A stretch of 63,980 nt of DNA, filler included, from Pelomyxa schiedti (Eukaryota; Protista; Evosea), in NCBI GenBank assembly GCA_020536535.1. It is 5 parts of 5 records of this genome, joined end to end, with 100 filler letters (N's around TTAATTAATTAA, not from the genome) between each part and the next. Parts side by side here need not be neighbours in the genome. Positions count along the whole stretch, not along the records: positions 22,663 to 40,867 come from JAHLWZ010001120.1; 4 more parts are not named here. One strand, 5' to 3'. The position numbers and the translations under genes are program-made. This document shows, piece by piece, positions 25,768-40,967 of this stretch. Under the pieces are notes generated by a model, which saw nothing but the letters and a program-made list of their open reading frames with translations, searched no databases and had not been told where the DNA came from. How positions within the stretch are numbered: the first letter of the stretch is position 1; each line of letters starts with the position of its first letter.

Positions 25768-25821
25768 CCCCACCACAATCCGAAAAATGTTTTGAGTTGA
25801 AACTGATTTACAGTAACCTAA

Positions 25822-27552
25822 ATGGCAGACGAGGCCCCACGGGCGTCCGACGCACCCACCACGGCTGCCACAGCAACAACAACAGCAGCGGCGACCGTCG
25901 TAGCCACTCGTGCGTCGTCGACTGGTGGGCTGGGGGACGGGGGGTCGTTCAGTGAGCTGCAGCGGGGGTACCGCCGGGTCGTGGAGTGCGAGGCGGACGG
26001 GGTGGAGACGGCCGAGGTGACGCGGCGGATGGCGCAGCTCCACGCCGCGGTGGCGGCAGCGTCCCTCGTTTCGCGCAACGAGACCCTCGACGACATATCC
26101 ACTGGCTCCCTCAAGTTGTGTTGTTGTTGTTGTTGTTGCTGTTGCTGTTGGCGATGTTTATCCCATAATAATAAGAATAATAGTACCCCCTATTACATCA
26201 TCCTGTACAGTACATACAGTGCATGCGTGTGTGTTGTTGACGCTGTAAAATGATGGGGAGGGTTACAATGATGGGATAAATGTCTATATCGTCAATTAAT
26301 TAATATCCGTTATGGGAGTTGACTTGTTGTTTTTGTTTCACACACAGGTACCTTTTGGTGCCGTTTTACTTGGGCGATTTGATAAGCAGAGGTTACACTT
26401 CAAATAGGATACCAATGCTGAAGAGAGCAATCGTACGATTGACCCACCTACTCATGCAGTGTTTTTTAACACAAAGTGTCAAGGCTTCGATGTCGAGCTT
26501 CCTGGAGGACGTGGAGCGACTCAAATTGGTTCACCCTGACGTGAGTTCCTCTCAAAAAAAAATCCCACTTCTAATAAAGTTCGTGACTTCACCACTCACA
26601 GGATTTATTTTCGGTCCGGACAGAGTCTCCTGCCGACCCTTCTGCAGCGCGGGCAATGAAGTTGGCACAATACGCCAGAGAAAAACAGGCCAAACAAGCT
26701 TTGCAAGTGCACTGTCCTTCCATTTTTACTCACATTAATAACTAAAATTCCCACACAGCAACAAGTCGTTGCAAGTGATCTTGCCAGAAAGAGGAATGAG
26801 GACCCTGAGGAAGCTGACAGAGAGCAACTGCTTTGCCATCTCAGACTCTCCGCCATTCAGTGTTGCCAGCAACTCAAAGTAATGTTGAACGAAATAACAA
26901 TAACCATGTGTCATTGCCTCTGACTCGTCTCATCTCATCTCCCTGCCCTTGCAGATGACACAACAAGAACTGGATATGTTGGAGCAAATTGAGAAGATGA
27001 AGGCAACCGGAAGAATGCCCACCGCACCTCCTCGTCCACCGCCACCACCACAACAACCAATAACGATCCTCCCCGTTGCCTCTGCAAGCCGATTGCAGGT
27101 GCAATCGAGAGTTTTTCAGGTATATATATTCATGAATGCAACCAAAACTCTTTCCGTGGAAGTAATTGAACACACAGCCCGGATATTCTTTGCCGACAAT
27201 GACTCCGGAGCAAGCTTTTGAACTGGACATGCAGAACAACAGCAATTACATTGTCAGACAAGCGTGAGTATAAACTAATGCCATCTATATACACCACTGC
27301 AAGACATTCACATACAAATTCTCTCAGGGACACCACAACCCGAACAGAAGAAACAGAAAGAGATGAAGATGCCGGAGATGATGATCCTGACGCCGTGAAC
27401 AAGGTATTCTCAAATATATCTCTAATATAATAATAACAATAATAAAACACCAAACAACAACAATAACAACAAATTACCATAAGGCACGACGGTGGGATGC
27501 GTGGAAGGATACACACCCAACTGGTTCCGGCAACAAGAAAGGTCAAGGCTAA
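25822..27552 (+). CDS. TAP42: TAP42/alpha4 PP2A regulator, multi-exon
   Basis: SRNETLDDISTGSLK|YLLVPFYLG N-terminal signature and ARRWDAWKDTHPTGSGN C-terminal signature; stop TAA 27550-27552. Confidence 0.92.
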
Positions 27553-27663
27553 ACATTATCCTGTTGATCCACACCCATAAAGTTTCAAACACACCAACAT
27601 TTGTAAAACATTAAGGGGCCAAAAAAAGCCACCACAACAAGCTTGTTTGGTGTTGCAGCCAAT

Positions 27664-30041
27664 TTAAATTGAGTGTAATGCATGGAGAGCATCAGAAGCA
27701 GAGAGCCTGGTGGCACGATCACGTGAGACCATCCCAACAAGAACCTGTGCAATGCTGCCAATTGCTGTTGGCGATGTTGCTGTTGCAGTCTTGGTGGCAG
27801 CAGAGACCTTGGTGGAACGATCACGTGACATCATCCCAACAAGAGCCTGTGCGATGGTACCCACCACCGTTGTGTTCGATGGCGCTGCTGCTTCTGCAGA
27901 TGTGGTGGCGACGGTGGTGGGGGGTGTAGTGTGGGGAGTAGTAGTAGTGCCATTTGCTGTGGAGGTGCCATTGTCGCTGTTGATGTGGAACCATTGTGGA
28001 GGGAGAGGAGGGAGCAACTCGGGGGTGAAGGTGCACATGTCTTGTTTGAACCGGCCGATGAACTTGTTGGTGGGTGGCAGCATGGCATCGTAAAAGGTGA
28101 GGGCGAGGGAGAAGGAGTCGCACTTGGCGAACGAGAACACGCAGGATGGGCCGCGCATCCTCACGAGGTCCCTGGAGAGTGCACTCACCTCGGGTGGCAT
28201 CGTGCCTGTGTTGCCCCACACCTGCCCGTTCTCTGCCCTCGTAACTGTCACTAGAAGCTCATCATCGTCAGTGGAAGAACACTCCACGGCTTCTCCAAAG
28301 TCAATCAACGTGAGCTTGTGAGTGGCTGGGTCAACAAGTATGTTGTCTCCTTTGATGTCCCTGCCAAAAATACAACAACATGAACAAAACGGAATGGAAA
28401 AAACAAAAAACAACCTGTGGACAACATGTGCTCTTTCGAGGTGAGCCACAGCACTCAGTGATTGAAGAAGCAAGTTCCTCACTGTCCTGGCTGTTACATC
28501 AAGCAGAAATTTAACCAATGGAACACCACAGAAAGGAAGCAGGAAAGCAAGTGACTTGTTCAGTGCAAATTCTCTGTAAACTGGCTGATCTGAGGGAATT
28601 GCATCAATGAACTCGGGTGGGAATCTTTCTTTGTTGAGGATTCTGGCTTATTTGTACATTTACTCTTGATTGTTGTGCTTATATTATATACGTTCTTACA
28701 GTTAACACCTCATCATACACACCGAGGAATGACAAGAGTTCCAAGAGGGTGGATAACATTTGGATGAAGTGGCACCGATGCAAGAACAATGCACTCTTTC
28801 ATGTACTTCTGCTTGATAAGAGTCTGCCGTGGTGTGTTCTCCCAGTTGAACAGGACTTTCATTGCCATGGTCGTTGGTGGTGCGTTGTTTTCATCACTTG
28901 TGGTGTTGCTGTTGCCCAGAGGAGGATGTGTGGTGGATGGGGAAGGAGCAGAAGGTTGAAGGTGGTGGTGCAACTGCGGCACACTGCTGCATCCTCCTCC
29001 ACCCCTGGGGAAAAATTTGACCTGGAATGTGGCTGCATTTGAGCCTGAACCGAGGAATTTCATCATTGTAAAAGAATCAATGTTTACTCCAACCAACGAT
29101 GTCATCGTCTCTGCTCTCTCCTGGTTTTTTGTTAAAGTGGGAGTTAAGGGATTTTAGTCAGTGATGACCTTGTAACATGCTTTGAGAACAGAGTTCTCCT
29201 CCTCAAGTGCCTGGATCCTCTTCTCCTTTTCTTGAAGTTTCCCTTCGAGAATCAGTACCCTCTCGTTCATTTCTCTCAATGAATCACCAAGACGCTTGTT
29301 CTCCACTGTGATTCTTGCAATTTCTCTCTCTTTCTCACTCATCTCCAACTCGAATGTGCTATTTTTTGGTGTTGCTGTGGTGGGCTTTGAGGATTGTACA
29401 AATCGCGAGGTGTTGTGAGCCTTCAAGAGGTTGCAGATATCAGTGCAGTTCTTTCTTGTTGCCACATCGAGCGGTGTTTCACCTTGGCTGTTTTTGCAGT
29501 TTGCGTCGATTCCACAGACTTTGAGCAGAACCTTCGCCCCTTCCACGAATCCCTCTTCACAAGCCACGTGCAGTGCCGTTTGCCCGTTCAGATACTGGTC
29601 CCCTGGTGTCTTCACCACCAAGTTGACGTCCACACGTGGGCACCCAAGCAACGCCACCACCACGCCCACTTGGCGCCACAGACACGCGATGGCCAGCGGG
29701 CACCCCTTGTTGACATCCACGTCGGGCCTCGCCGCCAGCATCCTCGCCACTGCCTCGTGACCCTTCCAAGCAGCGAGGCACAGCGGCGTCATGCCGTCGC
29801 CGTCGGTTGTGTTTGGGTCGACCGGGGGGTCACGCCGCGCGCCCACCGGGCCGAGGAGCTGGCCCACGAGCGGCCCGTGGCCGTGCTGGCACGCGACGTG
29901 GAGCAGGGTATGGCCGGACCCGTCGATGGGGGCGTTGATGTCCCACGCGGGAGACGGCGGCAGCGCGGCCATGCGGCCGTCCGCGCACGCGGCGTACATG
30001 TCCAGCCGCTTGTCCCATGCCAGCCGCTTTGTGGTTGTCAT
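27664..30041 (-). CDS. Ankyrin-repeat + coiled-coil + PINK1-like Ser/Thr kinase, multi-exon
   Basis: ANK motifs TLLHVAC, TPLCLAA, TALHVAC, TPLDVA; kinase LGSGSNA, MAMKVLFNW, HPNVIH, HR|DIKGDNILV, IDFGEA, GNTGTMPPEV, FAKCDSFSL. Confidence 0.85.
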
Positions 30042-30171
30042 TGCGGTGATGGTATGGGTTATTCTTGGTGGGTGTGAGAGGTGTCACTAGATAATGGGGT
30101 ACAGAACGGCACCACCAACAGTCGCAAAATTTTGTTTTTGGTAGTCCACACTGGCTGTTGACACTCCTCAA

Positions 30172-30245
30172 ACGCCACAGGAGGAACATCATGCGCTGGG
30201 ACCTCCAAGCACCAACGACGTTGGAGTCTTCTGGCACTCCAAAAC
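30172..30245 (+). pseudogene. Degenerate inverted copy of a kinase catalytic-loop exon
   Basis: CACAGGAGGAACATCATGCGCTGGGACCT…TCTTCTGGCACTCCAAAA aligns to the minus-strand exon at ~32955-33028 ([22 protein letters not shown]). Confidence 0.7.
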
Positions 30246-30542
30246 GCACAAGTAAAAAAACAATACCGTTGTTGCCGCAAACGACCACAAGTGCACAACA
30301 ATCAAAACAACACATGCACAACACGTCTAGACAACTACAAGATCTGGCCCCTACCGAGACTTCGCACGCACATTCAGCCTCCTCTTCGCGCTCGCGTTTG
30401 TTGCCACGAAAGATCAAAGCACCCAAAGAAAATGTGTGATCTGCACAGGTACATCTCAACATATCCGACACATTCAAGCACTGAAGCAGCCTCACACAGC
30501 TGTCAAAGAGTGGCACCTTAATTGCCCTGCGTTGAGTCGGGA

Positions 30543-31732
30543 ATGGACGGATTAATTGGAAACACACCATTGGTGGAATTAAAGAAGATCTCACTGCACG
30601 CTGTTGTTGGCGGTGCGGGACGTGTGCCGCCAGTGCGGATATGGGCAAAGTTGGAGATGTTCAACGTCGGAGGCAGCGTGAAGGACCTTGTCGCAATGTC
30701 GATGATAAACGACGCTGAGGAGCGCGGCGCACTTTTACCTGGCGGTAAATTCTCGAGGCGACGTCGGGAAACACCGGCATTGGCCTGGCACTCGTCGGCG
30801 CGAGGCGCGGATATCACGTGACTCTCGTCATGCCAAGATCCGTGTCTGTGGAGAGAAGGAAATTATTGAAGGTAAACGCGTCTCTTCGGCCTTTGAGAAA
30901 AAGTAACTGGTTTCTCAGGCTTATGGTGCCGAGCTCACCCTGGTTGACGGGAGCACTGCTGCGGCTGTGAAGAAGGCACAAGAAATTCACACAGATCACC
31001 CTGGTTTCTATTTCTCTCTCCGTATTCCGTTTTTTTCACACTTGTGTGTGAAGAATACTTTTACGCCAGCCAGTTCACAAACCCCGCAAATCCTCGTATT
31101 CACGAGCAGACCACCGGGCCCGAGATTATCCAGACTTTCGAGAAGCAAGGACTCCATGTTGATTGCTTTGTTTCAGGAGTGGGCACTGGCGGCACCATAA
31201 CCGGTGTGGGTCATGCTTTACGCAAGGCATATGGTAAAATCACTCTCTGCATTTTCCTTCATTTAATTGCCACTCCAAGGTGACTCTGTCGCCATAATTG
31301 CTGTGGAGCCTGATGCATCTCCAGTCCTGAGCGGAGGGTCTCCTGGACCCCACAAAATACAGGTACAAACCCACCACCATCATTACAGTCTCCAACAACA
31401 CCCACCAATTTTAGGGAATAGGAGCTGGCTTTATCCCTGAGGTTCTTGACAGGACCGTTTACAACGAAGTTTACCGCGTGTCCTATGAAGACGCACTCCA
31501 GAAAATGACCATCTGTGGAACACAGGAAGGCCTCCACGTCGGCGTTTCTGCGGGTGCCGCACTTCACGCTGCGGTAACATGGGCCAAACAGGCTGCTGCG
31601 TCATCCCACTCCACCACCACCACCACTTCCGCAACAACAACAAGCCCCGCTTCAGCCACAGCACCGCTGAATGTGGTTGTGGTTCTGCCGGACACAGGCG
31701 AGCGTTACCTCAGCCTCGTCGATTCTGAGTAA
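30543..31732 (+). pseudogene. cysK: Cysteine synthase (O-acetylserine sulfhydrylase, CysK-like), intron-containing, with 1-nt frameshift
   Basis: IGNTPLVEL, AKLEMFNVGGSVKD, (shifted frame) [40 protein letters not shown]|IGAGFIP, LPDTGERYLS. One A is missing at 30747-30749. Family call is secure; pseudogene status is not. Confidence 0.8.
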
Positions 31733-31991
31733 ACACCGAATAAAGACACAATACATGTAGATAGGTCGTAATGATCTTCACTCTGTCAAACAGAGTGATT
31801 GTCTACCACGATTCTACAGTATTGTTGTGAACCATACCCAAATTGTTAAAGTCACAATAAAACAAACTTCTTTTTTTTTTTCAAGTTGACGGTTTTCGTG
31901 CTTATCATCTTCAGCTGAGACAAAGAGGGTCATTTGTGCATGGTGAGAGTGTGAGTGCCGATGATGATGGGGTATCTGATGATGGGGGTGC

Positions 31992-35685
<3,694 letters not shown>

Positions 35686-36648
35686 GACGGTTCAGTTTTT
35701 ACGTTGGTTTTTTACTCAAAAGGATGGTGCAGAAAGGAGAGTATTTAAAAAGTATGTTTGATTATTGAGGCAGTAGTAGATGAACGCGCACCCTCTGCCA
35801 ACAAGATTAGCACGCGAATGATAGGAATAATGAAGTAGGAACATATGCAAGAACAAGGCATCATGATTTTTGTATGTCATCATGTGATCAGTTCTCTCAA
35901 TTGCCGCAAATTACAGCAGGTTGCTCTCGGTGCTTCAAGTGGGACTTAAAATGAGAGTAGTGCGGAGAGGAGTAACAACCCCTGGAATAATCGTAGTCCA
36001 GGAGAGCTCTACCTGTGTAACATTCAACAAATAAAAGAACAAGAATAGATTATATGCACATAATTCCTCCTGTGTTCACTAAGTTTAAAAGAACGAAACG
36101 AATGAAGTGCGATAATTTGGCTTCCATGTCAAAAATCGTTTCCATTTCTAAATTAATCAGTTTTAAAGCATTATAAATCGATAAACAAGGCACTCTTTGC
36201 ATACTTTTCCCCTAGATTTAGTAATTCATACAGATTTTACAGACACAGTCACGGCATCGTGAGAGTACTCTTTTTGAGGGTAAACAGGGAATTAGACTCA
36301 TTTCCAACAACAAATGCCATTACCGCTTTGAAATGCCAGTGAAGAAAGTTTCTTCTCCCAATTTCTGGGACCGGTCCCTGACCCCAGAAGTACTAGTATA
36401 AGCCTGCACATCGGCGGGCTCTTCGCCCGATTATTCCCTTGCGTGATGGTAATTAAGATAACACATCACATGACGATAACGAAAATGACTGGTGATTCTT
36501 TTATATTATAAGGAAGATTGCCACTAATAACGATCATCCCGTTGCAAACCGTTTTGGAAGAGGCTGGCGTGATCCAGTTTTGGACCTCAGATATCTCGAT
36601 TGATCGCCAGCATGTTCACCAAAATTTAAAGACAACACTCGAAGTACG

Positions 36649-39600
36649 ATGGCAACAAAGACATGCAACCACCCACGTGTTGGGCCATGGGAGTGGTTCC
36701 TTGCTGTCGACGACGGGGACACCGAAGCAATGCGCCGCATGCTGGCCGGCGACCCCAGCCTCGTCCACTCGGTTAACGACAGACGCCAAATGGTGGTGCG
36801 TAGCGCGTGGAGTTGGGGGGGGCTCTTCGTTGCATCTCACTTTGGAGTTATTATAACTTACGTTTTCACTGCAGACAGCGTTGCACGCGGCGGCGTGGGG
36901 AGGGAAAGAGCGGTGCGTTGACTTACTGTTGTCAATGAAAATCAATGTCGGTTCCCAGGTTTGTACATCTTTCTTCACGTGTCGTGTGTGAACTCATCAC
37001 AAACTGCATCACACAGATTGTACGTAAATTCCTGTATATGTTCGCATTACACTCCCACATCCACCTTAAATGAAAAACTAAACCAAGTGTATGACATCTC
37101 CAGGGTAAAGCTGTATGTTTCATCCTCCCTCTTTGATGAATCATTCAATTTCTCACTCCCTCTTTCACTTTTAGGGAGTATGTAACTGCTCAACCCTCTT
37201 TGATTGATGCTCAGCTTCACACTCACTTCAATTCCCCCTTTTGCCTTGTTGCACTTTTAGATTGTGTGTCACTACCTATCCCCCTTTCAATTATCCACCA
37301 ACTTCTCACTTGCTTAAATTTCTTTTTTGGTTTGCCTTATTGGGCTTTCAGCTTGTGTGTAACCACCTCCAAACCTCTTTATATGTGTCACTCACTTCAA
37401 TTTCCCTTTTTATCTTTGCATTGGTCCACTTTTAGAATGTGTGTAAGGATCTGAACCTCTTTGAAATCACTAATTTGCTTTCAGGGAGTATGTAACAATC
37501 CTCAGGCCAATGATTCATTCTCATGCACTTCAATTTCCCTCTTTTACTTTGCCTTTTAGATTGTGTGTAACCGCAGCCCTCTTTGCATTCATCCATTTCT
37601 CACTCACTTCAATTTCTCTTTTACTCTGCCTTTTAGTCTGTGTGTAACCACCCGACACTCTTTGAATGACTCACCAATTTCTCACTCACTTCAATTTTCC
37701 TATTGCTTTTCCTTGCTGTGCTTTTAGTATGTGTGTAACCCAGCCCTCTTTGAATCACTCACCAGGTTTCTCACTAATTTCAATTTTCCTCTTTCAGGGA
37801 GTATGTAACTACCTCTTCAAATTATTATCCAATTTCTCACTCATTTCAATTTTCCTCTTTCAGGGAGTATGTAACTCCCTCTTCAAATTATTCTCCAATT
37901 TCTCACTTGCTCCGATTTCCCTCTTTTCCTTTGCCTTGGTGGCTTAGCTTGTGTGTAAATGCCAAACAGGCTTTGAGCGATTAACCAATTTCTCACTCCA
38001 ATTCAGGGAGTATGTCTCTTTGTTTGATTCATCAATTTCTCACTTACCTTAATTTCCTCTTTTAATTTGCTTGGTGCACCTAGTATGTGTGTTAACCCAC
38101 CCTCTTTGAATGATTCACCGATTTCTCACATAAATTTCTCCCTTTTGCTTTGCCTTGTGGCATTTTAGAATGTGCGTAATAACCCCATACATCCAGCAAT
38201 TTCTCACTCCTTTCAATTTCCCTCTTTGCCTTGTGGCCTTTTAGAATGTGCGTAAGCAGCCAAAACATCCATCAACTTCTAACTCGTTTCAATTTCCCTC
38301 TTTTGGATTTGCGCTCTTAGTATGTGTGTAGCCAACCAACATTCCTTGAATGATCCACTAATGTCCAACTCCCTTCCTTTTCCTTCTTTTGCTTCACCTT
38401 GGTGTGCTTTCAGTATGTGTGTAGCCTCAAACACTCTTTGATTAATTCACCCTCACTTCAATTTTATTCAGGGAGTATGTAACCACCCAACCCCGGGAAT
38501 GATCCATCTTTCTCACTCATGTCAATTTCCCCCTTTTCGCACTTTTAGATTGTGTGTAACCACTCAACCAACTTTACATAATTGACCAATTTCACTTTTA
38601 AAAAGGGAGTATGTAACTGTCCCACCATAATTAATTTCTCACTTGCTGAATTTCCCTTTGCTTTGCATGTTTCTGTTCTTGATCATATGATAGACTGTAT
38701 GCCAACCCCTTTTGATACTTCATATGCTTACATTTGTTGTGCAGGAAGTATGAGTGTTTTGTTTTGTTGGCACCTTACTTATTTCTTCTCTTGGTTCTTC
38801 TCTTTTAAATCAAGGGTGATGTATGTCTCCACTTTTTTGAGTTTAGTTTGGTTCAACCTTTCTTCTCTCTCAGACTGCACTTCACCTTGCCTCTAGACAG
38901 GGAAATGTTGAAATTGTGAAACGACTTCTCTCGTGTGTAGGTATTGATCCTCAGATCAAGGTCTCTCTTTCCCCAAGTGTGGTTGAAGTATAGTAATTTT
39001 CTATCTTCACAGAACAAGGAGGGAAAAACAGCTCATGAGTGCTCGAAAAATGATGAAGTTCAGCAACTCTTCCAATCTGTAATGTGTTGCACAATTCCTG
39101 CTGCCACACTTGTGCAGGCAGTCTCCACACCCAAAGTACCCAAAGTTTCTGTGCCACCAAGAAAAAAACTACCAGAACCACCCATCACAATCACTTCACT
39201 TGATCAACTTCACAGTCTCATCATCAAAGACCTATCTTCATTCGCTCCCAACAAACCATCACCATCACCATCATCCCCCTCCAGGGTTCTATCCAAAGTC
39301 GCTGAAGATGTCATCAACCACTTTGGGAAACAAAGTACCATCATGGAGGCATCAGTTCTAATGGTGGTCACAGACCAATTATCGCGAACCCTGCCAATTC
39401 TACTTGATCAGCATAAGGTTCACCAAAGCAATGTAGAAAACAATGCTGCGCAAGTTGAAGCCACAGAGAAGCAAGTGGCACTGGCACAGGCGCATGTGCA
39501 AGAACTGGAACACCAACTTGCACAAGCACAACAACTTCTAGTGGAAATCACCAAGGCCAACACTCTTGCAAAGGAGCAACTCATTGAGTCCCGCAAATTT

Positions 39601-40569
39601 GTGGAGACTACAACCCAAAACATTGGCATGTTACAAGAAAGGCAAGAGCCCCTCAAGTCCAAACTGGCTTCTCTCCAACATGTCCTATCCTCTCTGAGAC
39701 AGAAAGCAAGCACGCGAGATCTGCTGCAGTTCGACGTCAAGGACATTGGGGGCTTGCTCTGTGAACTGGGTCTTCAGAAGCACACTGAGAAGTTTACTGC
39801 AAATGAAGTTGATGGTGAGGTCTTCCTGCAACTGAACAAGACTGGGTTTGAGGAACTTGGAGTGATTGAGAGAGCAGAGCAGGACCTGCTGAACCACACA
39901 AGAGCAATGATACAGAACTGTGGCAAAATTCGTGCACCATGGAGCACAAGGGCAGCAGCAGCCTGGGATGTGGACAAGGTTACCGAATGGTTGCAATCCC
40001 AAGGAATACCTCCCCAGGCCATCTCATGGTTTCATGATAAGGGGATCACAGGCATCTCATTGCTTTTTATGGATGCACAGGAAATAAGCACAGTTCCAGG
40101 GCTGCCATTTGGACCCCGGCACAAGCTACTGAAGCGAATTGGAGAGCTTCAGTCCCAAGTCTACACACCAGGAAATTCCAATTCATCAGGTTTGTGGTAC
40201 CTACTCTCTAAGTCACCTACCACCCCATAAATAAAAAAACACAGGTCCAGGTCACACAACAGTACGTGCACATTATTCTGCTCCACCACCACCTGAATAC
40301 CTTTGCCCGATTACATGTGACTTGATGGACACTCCTGTTGTTGCTGCTGATGGGTGTGTGTTTGACAAAACCCTTTCCCTGTTTATAATTCCTGTGTTGC
40401 GTGCATGAAATCTAGTTACTGCTACGAGAAGCTCGTTATTGAGGATTGGCTGAGTACACACGACACATCCCCAATGACCAACACTGTTCTGCCCAGCAAA
40501 GTGCTGGTGGCCTGTGACACACTCCACAGATCCATTCTCGATTGGAAGACAGCCAATAACATTCCCTAA
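36649..40569 (+). CDS. Ankyrin repeats + coiled coil + 2 SAM domains + U-box E3 ubiquitin ligase
   Basis: ANK exons TALHAAAWGG…INVGSQ (ends 36958) and TALHLASRQGNVEIVKRLL…DPQIK|NKEGKTAH (from 38874); SAM motifs FTANEVDGEVFLQL and WDVDKVTEWL…GPRHKLLKRI; U-box EYLCPITCDLMDTPVVAADG|YCYEKLVIEDWL…TSPMT; stop 40567-40569. Confidence 0.9.
37017..38820 (+). other. Array of 25 predicted in-frame microexons (23 x 3 nt, one 9 nt, one 6 nt) inside the ANK-SAM-U-box gene
   Basis: Each unit is (pyrimidine tract)AG|NNN|GT(A/G)(T/C)GT or a close variant, usually with an upstream CTCAC/CTAAC-like branch motif; spacing 46-90 nt; no stop codons; the last exon GGTGAT completes the ankyrin G-x-TALH motif. Confidence 0.8.
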
Positions 40570-40967
40570 AAATGGATAGTCTATTAGGGTCCTTTCTTTG
40601 TAGTAGTGACGAGTCTGTGCCGGAAGACTTGGGCCTGGTGTAGTGAAGACAAATAGTTAGAAATGGGTGGAAATAGTGGCGGTATGGAGAGTACTTTCCA
40701 AATGGCATCGGCATCGTCAACGAGTTATGAGGTCACATTCACAACAGCAATGTAAAATAGTAGAGGTAATAACTGGCTCGTGGGGCCAGAGCGAAGGGAG
40801 GGCGGAAGTGTAAGGAACGTGGAGATACAGCCCGGCATAGTGACGAGAAATACTTCAGCATCACGGTNNNNNNNNNNNNNNNNNNNNNNNNNNNNNNNNN
40901 NNNNNNNNNNNTTAATTAATTAANNNNNNNNNNNNNNNNNNNNNNNNNNNNNNNNNNNNNNNNNNNN

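Follow-up and report, generated by a model that had tools for sequence, protein, structure and literature searches.

A family of ankyrin proteins in the amoeba Pelomyxa schiedti carries a hypervariable loop encoded by consecutive one-codon exons

The gene Pelo_16390 of the anaerobic amoeba Pelomyxa schiedti contains, between two ankyrin exons, an array of codon-sized exons that is a real, RNA-supported and unannotated system and a variant of a rare known design. It lies in a window of 63,980 nucleotides (the whole stretch of DNA that was analysed), whose positions 22,663-40,867 come from record JAHLWZ010001120.1 of assembly GCA_020536535.1. Within 36959-38873 there are 25 microexons, each preceded by AG and followed by GT; 23 of them measure 3 nt, all are in phase 0, and they are set among 26 introns of 46-90 nt, every one of the GT-AG type. 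Inclusion of all 25 yields an insert of 28 aa in a protein of about 613 residues. An earlier note, made from the sequence alone, had listed the same exons, introns and insert, and our parse confirms all three. The gene is laid out as follows.

36649..36795, plus strand: exon 1 (49 aa), which carries the start codon and an ankyrin-like N-terminal capping repeat (reading frame)
36875..36958, plus strand: exon 2, ankyrin repeat 5' of the array, ending in phase 0 (Pfam Ank, E=5e-5)
37017..37112, plus strand: 5' framework microexons at 37017 (3 nt, Ile) and 37104 (9 nt, Gly-Lys-Ala) (paralog conservation)
37175..38551, plus strand: variable array of 19 three-nt exons (motif parse, in part RNA), starting at 37175, 37261, 37352, 37436, 37485, 37560, 37637, 37728, 37798, 37864, 37948, 38007, 38084, 38169, 38245, 38321, 38414, 38472 and 38549
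38606..38820, plus strand: 3' framework microexons at 38606 (Gly), 38694 (Thr), 38745 (Glu) and 38815 (6 nt, Gly-Asp)
38874..38960, plus strand: ankyrin repeat 3' of the array, starting in phase 0 (Pfam Ank, E=2e-7)
39013..40189, plus strand: large exon with the end of the ankyrin block, a Pro/Ser-rich linker, a probable coiled coil and two SAM domains
40245-40353 and 40416-40569, plus strand: last two exons, U-box and stop (Pfam U-box)

The domain order, ANK-coiled coil-SAM-SAM-U-box according to Pfam, agrees with the ankyrin-SAM-U-box architecture of E3 type proposed earlier. The U-box is recognised on the annotated protein (E=4e-14; 53 bits against a curated cut-off of 21.4) and again on each of the last two exons, and the large exon matches SAM_1 and SAM_2 with E<1e-13, the matches to coiled-coil families being weak. 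Pfam scans and precomputed domains gave no NACHT or NB-ARC match in the gene or its paralogs. Exon 1 has a homologous exon in paralogs (tblastn) and an identical junction in the annotated Pelo_4155; searched alone it gave no Pfam match, and it had no RNA coverage in the contigs examined. Exon 2 shows 54-75% identity to its paralogs. Downstream of the array, RNA covers the large exon and shows removal of introns 38961-39012 and 40190-40244. The public annotation of Pelo_16390 is wrong, with a false N-terminus built from array introns, and every family member examined was similarly mis-annotated, being either split or given a false N-terminus. The genome is rich in introns, with 7.43 per gene, and the words "exon" and "ankyrin" are absent from the main text of the genome paper (PMC8887013); our literature search retrieved no report of microexons in Pelomyxa.

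Several observations concern the surroundings of the gene. In run X4, one RNA contig terminates with a poly(A) tail immediately 5' of the U-box coding region (window 40275), where the genome has no A-run; an AATAAA lies in the intron preceding this site, and the contig is possibly an early-polyadenylated form without the U-box, or an artefact. The neighbouring gene on the minus strand (window 40600-40800) gives a spliced transcript with an intron at about 40634-40693, which ends a few dozen bases from the stop of the U-box gene, so that the 3' ends of the two genes are convergent. Further upstream, an ORF of 781 aa on the minus strand (window 23698-26043), Gln-rich and with a CCHC zinc-knuckle-like motif at its end, resembles a retrotransposon Gag by eye.

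The regularity of the array exceeds chance by far. A strict acceptor-NNN-donor motif matches 22 times in 36959-38873 and only 2 times in the rest of the 18-kb piece; 1000 dinucleotide shuffles averaged 0.04 matches and never exceeded 2. When the motif is relaxed slightly, 23 matches are found at a spacer of 3 nt, and at most one at any other spacer between 0 and 12 nt. The introns between the variable exons are related to each other and carry a branch-point-like CTCAC or CTAAC and a pyrimidine tract; they differ by 33%, and the array is older than those at three paralogous loci, L006-L008, whose young units nearly all have a branch-point-like CTGAC about 47 nt upstream of the acceptor. By comparison with the paralogs the 25 exons are read as six framework and 19 variable exons, because the first two (37017 and 37104) are conserved there as well. 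It is true, as noted earlier, that none of the microexons is a stop codon; this is uninformative, however: a variable codon is either GGA or has T or C as its last base, and so can never be a stop. A different parse, in which GGA units would contain a TAT exon 4 nt downstream, was refuted at the unit tested, where RNA has the GGA of 37485, and in paralogs it yields TGT, TGC or stop codons.

Direct evidence for splicing comes from assembled contigs of two single-cell RNA runs, a type of data in which assembly drops rare variants. One contig of run X3, 217 nt long and at a depth of 2.8, extends over part of the array. It joins ATT 37261 to CTT 37352 by an exact GT..AG excision of 88 nt, and reads AAT 37436, GGA 37485, ATT 37560 and TCT 37637 contiguously, three introns having been removed; the introns spliced out are thus 37264-37351, 37439-37484, 37488-37559 and 37563-37636. 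The introns after GGA 37175 and after CTT 37352 are kept, and the contig ends inside the intron after TCT 37637. Over 212 nt it is identical to the consecutive-microexon model, with five more letters at its start unaligned. The joints are missing from both DNA runs. They result from splicing, because deletion of a DNA unit would take a triplet along with each intron, and because the first joint has no shared letters that would allow template switching. Three-nucleotide exons are thus kept while individual introns are removed; splicing of the molecule is only partly complete, introns leaving one by one and out of order. The claim that the microexons are real and spliced is borne out by these four exact excisions. 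Expression is low, and a fully spliced transcript across the array was not seen among the RNA contigs.

The position of the insert in the protein follows from the four 3' framework exons (G-T-E-GD), which supply the five residues of the canonical D-x-x-G-x hairpin; the same five-residue spacing separates the end of one repeat from the TxLH motif of the next in canonical ankyrins. Because these exons supply the five residues, the insert sits at the start of an ankyrin beta-hairpin. That the end of the array restores the hairpin had been recognised previously, but the last four exons (38606, 38694, 38745 and 38815) are needed for this and not the last three. The ankyrin beta-hairpin lines the binding face of ankyrins and DARPins. 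Placement of the insert within the hairpin agrees also with an AlphaFold model of the annotated N-terminus of Pelo_4155, which has a hairpin of canonical length and is predicted as a DARPin-like stack (pLDDT 92.5, TM about 0.8 to DARPins); this model is alignment-based, a single-sequence run being poor (pLDDT 51).

Homolog searches recovered relatives in no species other than P. schiedti; outside Pelomyxa, protein searches seeded with the ankyrin portion matched only generic ankyrins and, being length-limited, are uninformative on other amoebae. In scans with DNA patterns, a three-unit pattern found just three unrelated satellites in metagenomes (L009-L011) and a two-unit pattern had no match in viral or prokaryotic contigs, in collections that do not cover most protist genomes. 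Within P. schiedti the array occurs at the same position in eight further intact paralogs, six of them complete and two cut by contig ends (L005 10670 and L008 1604), in addition to one decayed and one deleted copy. Because two arrays run off their contigs, array lengths and family size are underestimated. Separately, reads of DNA run X1 cover a conserved exon piece about 11 times as deeply as its surroundings (308 versus 28).

The complete paralogs contain 10-19 microexons each, compared with 25 in Pelo_16390, and the number of variable one-codon exons in the seven complete arrays is 4, 4, 5, 13, 13, 13 and 19. The six framework exons, which flank this variable centre, are identical in plan in all seven: the 5' framework reads I/T and then G/E-x-P/A in all intact paralogs, and the 3' framework is kept as G, I/T, E/Q and GD in 7/7 complete arrays. 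AG and GT are intact at all 113 of the 113 microexons in these arrays. The decayed copy (L002 16390-18509), which is 95.7% identical to Pelo_6819, served as a control; it has a frameshift in the second ankyrin exon and large deletions, and acceptors, donors and framework exons have been lost. The deleted copy (L004 6500-7884) lacks the region from the 9-nt framework exon into the linker and is annotated as a truncated, SAM-only protein (Pelo_6014).

At L007 the same module stands upstream of a protein kinase, not of SAM-SAM-U-box. This kinase is related to an array-free ankyrin-kinase gene adjoining Pelo_16390, one of two on the minus strand of the window (32900-35685 and 27660-30041), each with its ankyrin block in one continuous, microexon-free ORF. 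In its kinase-side region, the gene at 32900-35685 is 61% identical to the L007 paralog, which points to domain shuffling between the ankyrin-kinase and array families. At L002, at least four ankyrin-kinase genes are interleaved with three microexon-array genes in a layout like that of a receptor cluster.

The variable codons evolve in a manner altogether different from the introns that surround them. In the young arrays (L006-L008), introns differ by 2.7-5.5% and codon position 3 hardly at all (about 0%), whereas positions 1-2 differ by 58-67%. When 34 young units are placed on trees, 8-13 changes are needed at each of these two positions, while the 96 intron columns average 1.2 changes and none needs more than 6; the bases that determine the amino acid thus change about 10 times faster than the surrounding intron. 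Units cluster by gene, with 11 label changes against 45 with shuffled labels, a pattern of concerted evolution. Most of the Gly (GGA) units of L007 and L008 have their own acceptor variant and form a separate unit lineage common to both genes. The tandem paralogs L001a and L001b have flanks that are 98.6% and 99.0% identical, and variable codons that read DGLG in one and LSLP in the other. Comparison of the paralogs thus shows the loop to be hypervariable across the gene family, with diversification at the level of DNA. Because diversification acts on DNA, one invariant insert per gene would be compatible with it, contrary to what had been argued.

The range of this variation is limited. The 79 variable codons encode only G, Y, L, D, I, P, F, N, H and S; GT is absent from the interior of all of them (0/79), and GGA is the only Gly codon used. 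The array codons are under splicing constraint. The changes comprise both transitions and transversions and thus show no evident sign of a simple deaminase. The fast codon change is most simply explained by diversifying selection; short-tract gene conversion or a targeted mutator could be an alternative cause.

With moderate confidence we favour a two-tier model in which diversification of the DNA is combined with exon skipping. The array would be a codon-by-codon cassette for the hypervariable loop of an intracellular ankyrin sensor, each unit of about 50-100 nt consisting of one intron and one codon. The differences among paralogous arrays demonstrate gain, loss and within-gene homogenisation of units; loops of 4-19 variable residues result, and loop length shifts in frame by single residues at a time. 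Diversifying selection would act on the ligand-binding loop at the start of the beta-hairpin, held by the six conserved framework microexons. In the second tier, some variable exons would be skipped, giving many loop variants per gene; we consider the chances of this about balanced, and it is suggested by the phase-0 symmetry of the exons and by a precedent in truffles discussed below. With the framework fixed, the computed ceiling for Pelo_16390 is 2^19 splice paths and 138,633 distinct peptides. Bound targets would be handled through SAM-mediated oligomerisation and putative U-box ubiquitination, and in kinase paralogs through the kinase instead, as the domains suggest.

A real possibility, if short of a probable one, is that splicing is constitutive, that each gene makes one fixed loop, and that all diversity stems from unequal crossing-over and codon selection in the DNA, with the introns acting as handles for recombination, so that a single codon presents a target of 100 nt. 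Genomes with short introns splice by intron definition, in which skipping is disfavoured, and the partial, out-of-order intron removal in the X3 contig fits this mode. Many plant microexons are likewise included at levels >0.5 next to detained flanking introns (PMC8831610). Intact arrays contain zero dead units, and the loops of paralogs already differ strongly. The X3 contig, the sole RNA contig covering the array, includes every exon that it spans and skips none; however, just two internal exons are truly tested by it, a result compatible with moderate skipping, and skipping of 10% per exon would already alter about 87% of 19-exon transcripts (0.9^19 = 0.135 unchanged). The phase of the exons means that skipping preserves the frame, and the analogous truffle arrays are extensively alternatively spliced according to the source passages cited below. 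The annotations of Pelo_4155 and Pelo_4154, which include only some microexons, were discarded as evidence for skipping because these models conflict with each other and are output of an Augustus/EVM/PASA pipeline.

It is improbable that the array acts mainly as a brake on expression, with 26 closely spaced introns that splice slowly, intron retention that limits or times the E3 ligase, and a loop that is a neutral linker. RNA depth is low and the only array contig retains introns, and several retained introns carry stops or frameshifts; but a neutral linker predicts a codon rate no higher than that of the introns, in contrast to the tenfold excess at positions 1-2, and the restricted residue set also argues against it. 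A plain intronic minisatellite, removed as one 1.9-kb intron with the triplets as a by-product of the repeat unit, is rejected by the RNA joints in X3: Tandem Repeats Finder calls parts of the array as 66-77 nt repeats and fully spliced mRNA is missing from the contigs, but single introns are removed precisely with the triplets retained, a protein made by splicing one ankyrin exon straight to the other would lack the five hairpin residues, and every functional copy has kept its splice sites, in contrast to the pseudogene, where they have decayed.

The codon-exon arrays have their closest known counterpart in a fungus. The earlier note knew of no run of 20 or more one-codon exons, but such a design had been reported: the nank (NACHT-ankyrin) genes of Tuber melanosporum contain tens of codon-sized 3-bp microexons that are alternatively spliced (Iotti et al. 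2012, PMID 22289772, according to the passages on it in PMC4986451, PMC3689799, PMC10197012 and PMC13449251). As described in these passages, nank is, like the Pelomyxa family, an expanded ankyrin gene family with tens of 3-bp microexons, which were proposed to diversify a non-self sensor. This precedent lowers the novelty of the Pelomyxa arrays, yet makes skipping more plausible. In contrast to nank, the Pelomyxa genes belong to an amoebozoan, lack NACHT and have SAM-SAM-U-box or a kinase as output; alternative splicing is reported for the truffle genes, whereas the Pelomyxa contig shows consecutive inclusion, a comparison in which nank is represented by those descriptions. For the Pelomyxa arrays, turnover of units at the DNA level and codon-specific hypervariability are shown. 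Compared with nank by description and lacking NACHT, the Pelomyxa array family is not a member of it, and the codon-exon arrays of amoeba and truffle are probably convergent.

Other systems share single features. Fungal NLRs with high internal conservation, such as the WD40 repeats of Podospora NWD/HET proteins (PMC13449251), have near-identical repeats, concerted evolution and a few hypervariable codons, and their repeats are frequently gained, lost and shuffled, as are the Pelomyxa DNA units. However, the NWD/HET repeat unit codes for an entire domain of about 40 aa, whereas in Pelomyxa the NLR core is absent, the homogenised part is an intron, and the repeat is intronic except for one codon per unit. 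[quoted passage not shown] Schistosome MEG genes generate variants from series of 10-20 short exons, most of them symmetric (PMC10526429), but their exons are mostly 15 bp (6-81), their introns 0.1-5 kb and their products secreted, in contrast to exons of 3 nt, introns of 46-90 nt and a single loop in a folded domain that is cytosolic by its predicted context. LoopDARPins, engineered ankyrin scaffolds with a protruding diversified loop and a broader binding range (PMC5405424), are a synthetic library, and their likeness to the Pelomyxa loop is a functional analogy only.

The most likely role of the array proteins would be recognition of foreign proteins from bacteria, symbionts, viruses or parasites, a putative immune role. 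Passages of PMC10579272 describe prokaryotic symbionts in P. schiedti. In its widest form, which we put forward tentatively and as rather doubtful in its entirety, the family may be an independently evolved anticipatory repertoire of at least about ten genes, each with thousands of loops made by skipping on a fixed framework; unit shuffling in the DNA and strong diversifying selection or a targeted mutator would refresh the codons, and the module would be swapped between ubiquitin ligases and kinases, possibly policing bacterial and archaeal endosymbionts.

If the two-tier model holds, codon-sized exon arrays in ankyrin sensors arose both in a fungus and in an amoeba, and what appeared to be an oddity of truffles would become a recurring strategy of receptor diversification, wired in Pelomyxa, judging from the domains, to ubiquitination or phosphorylation and not to an NLR. 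Encoding and diversifying a loop codon by codon in an ankyrin family would surprise experts on splicing as well as experts on immune evolution. The arrays offer a natural system for studying how the spliceosome handles more than 20 consecutive 3-nt exons, and introns that are 95-97% identical next to saturated codon positions give an unusually clean signal of diversifying evolution. As the family members are mis-annotated, similar arrays have probably been overlooked in other intron-rich protist genomes. For P. schiedti itself, the array family suggests a separately evolved route to many different recognition proteins.
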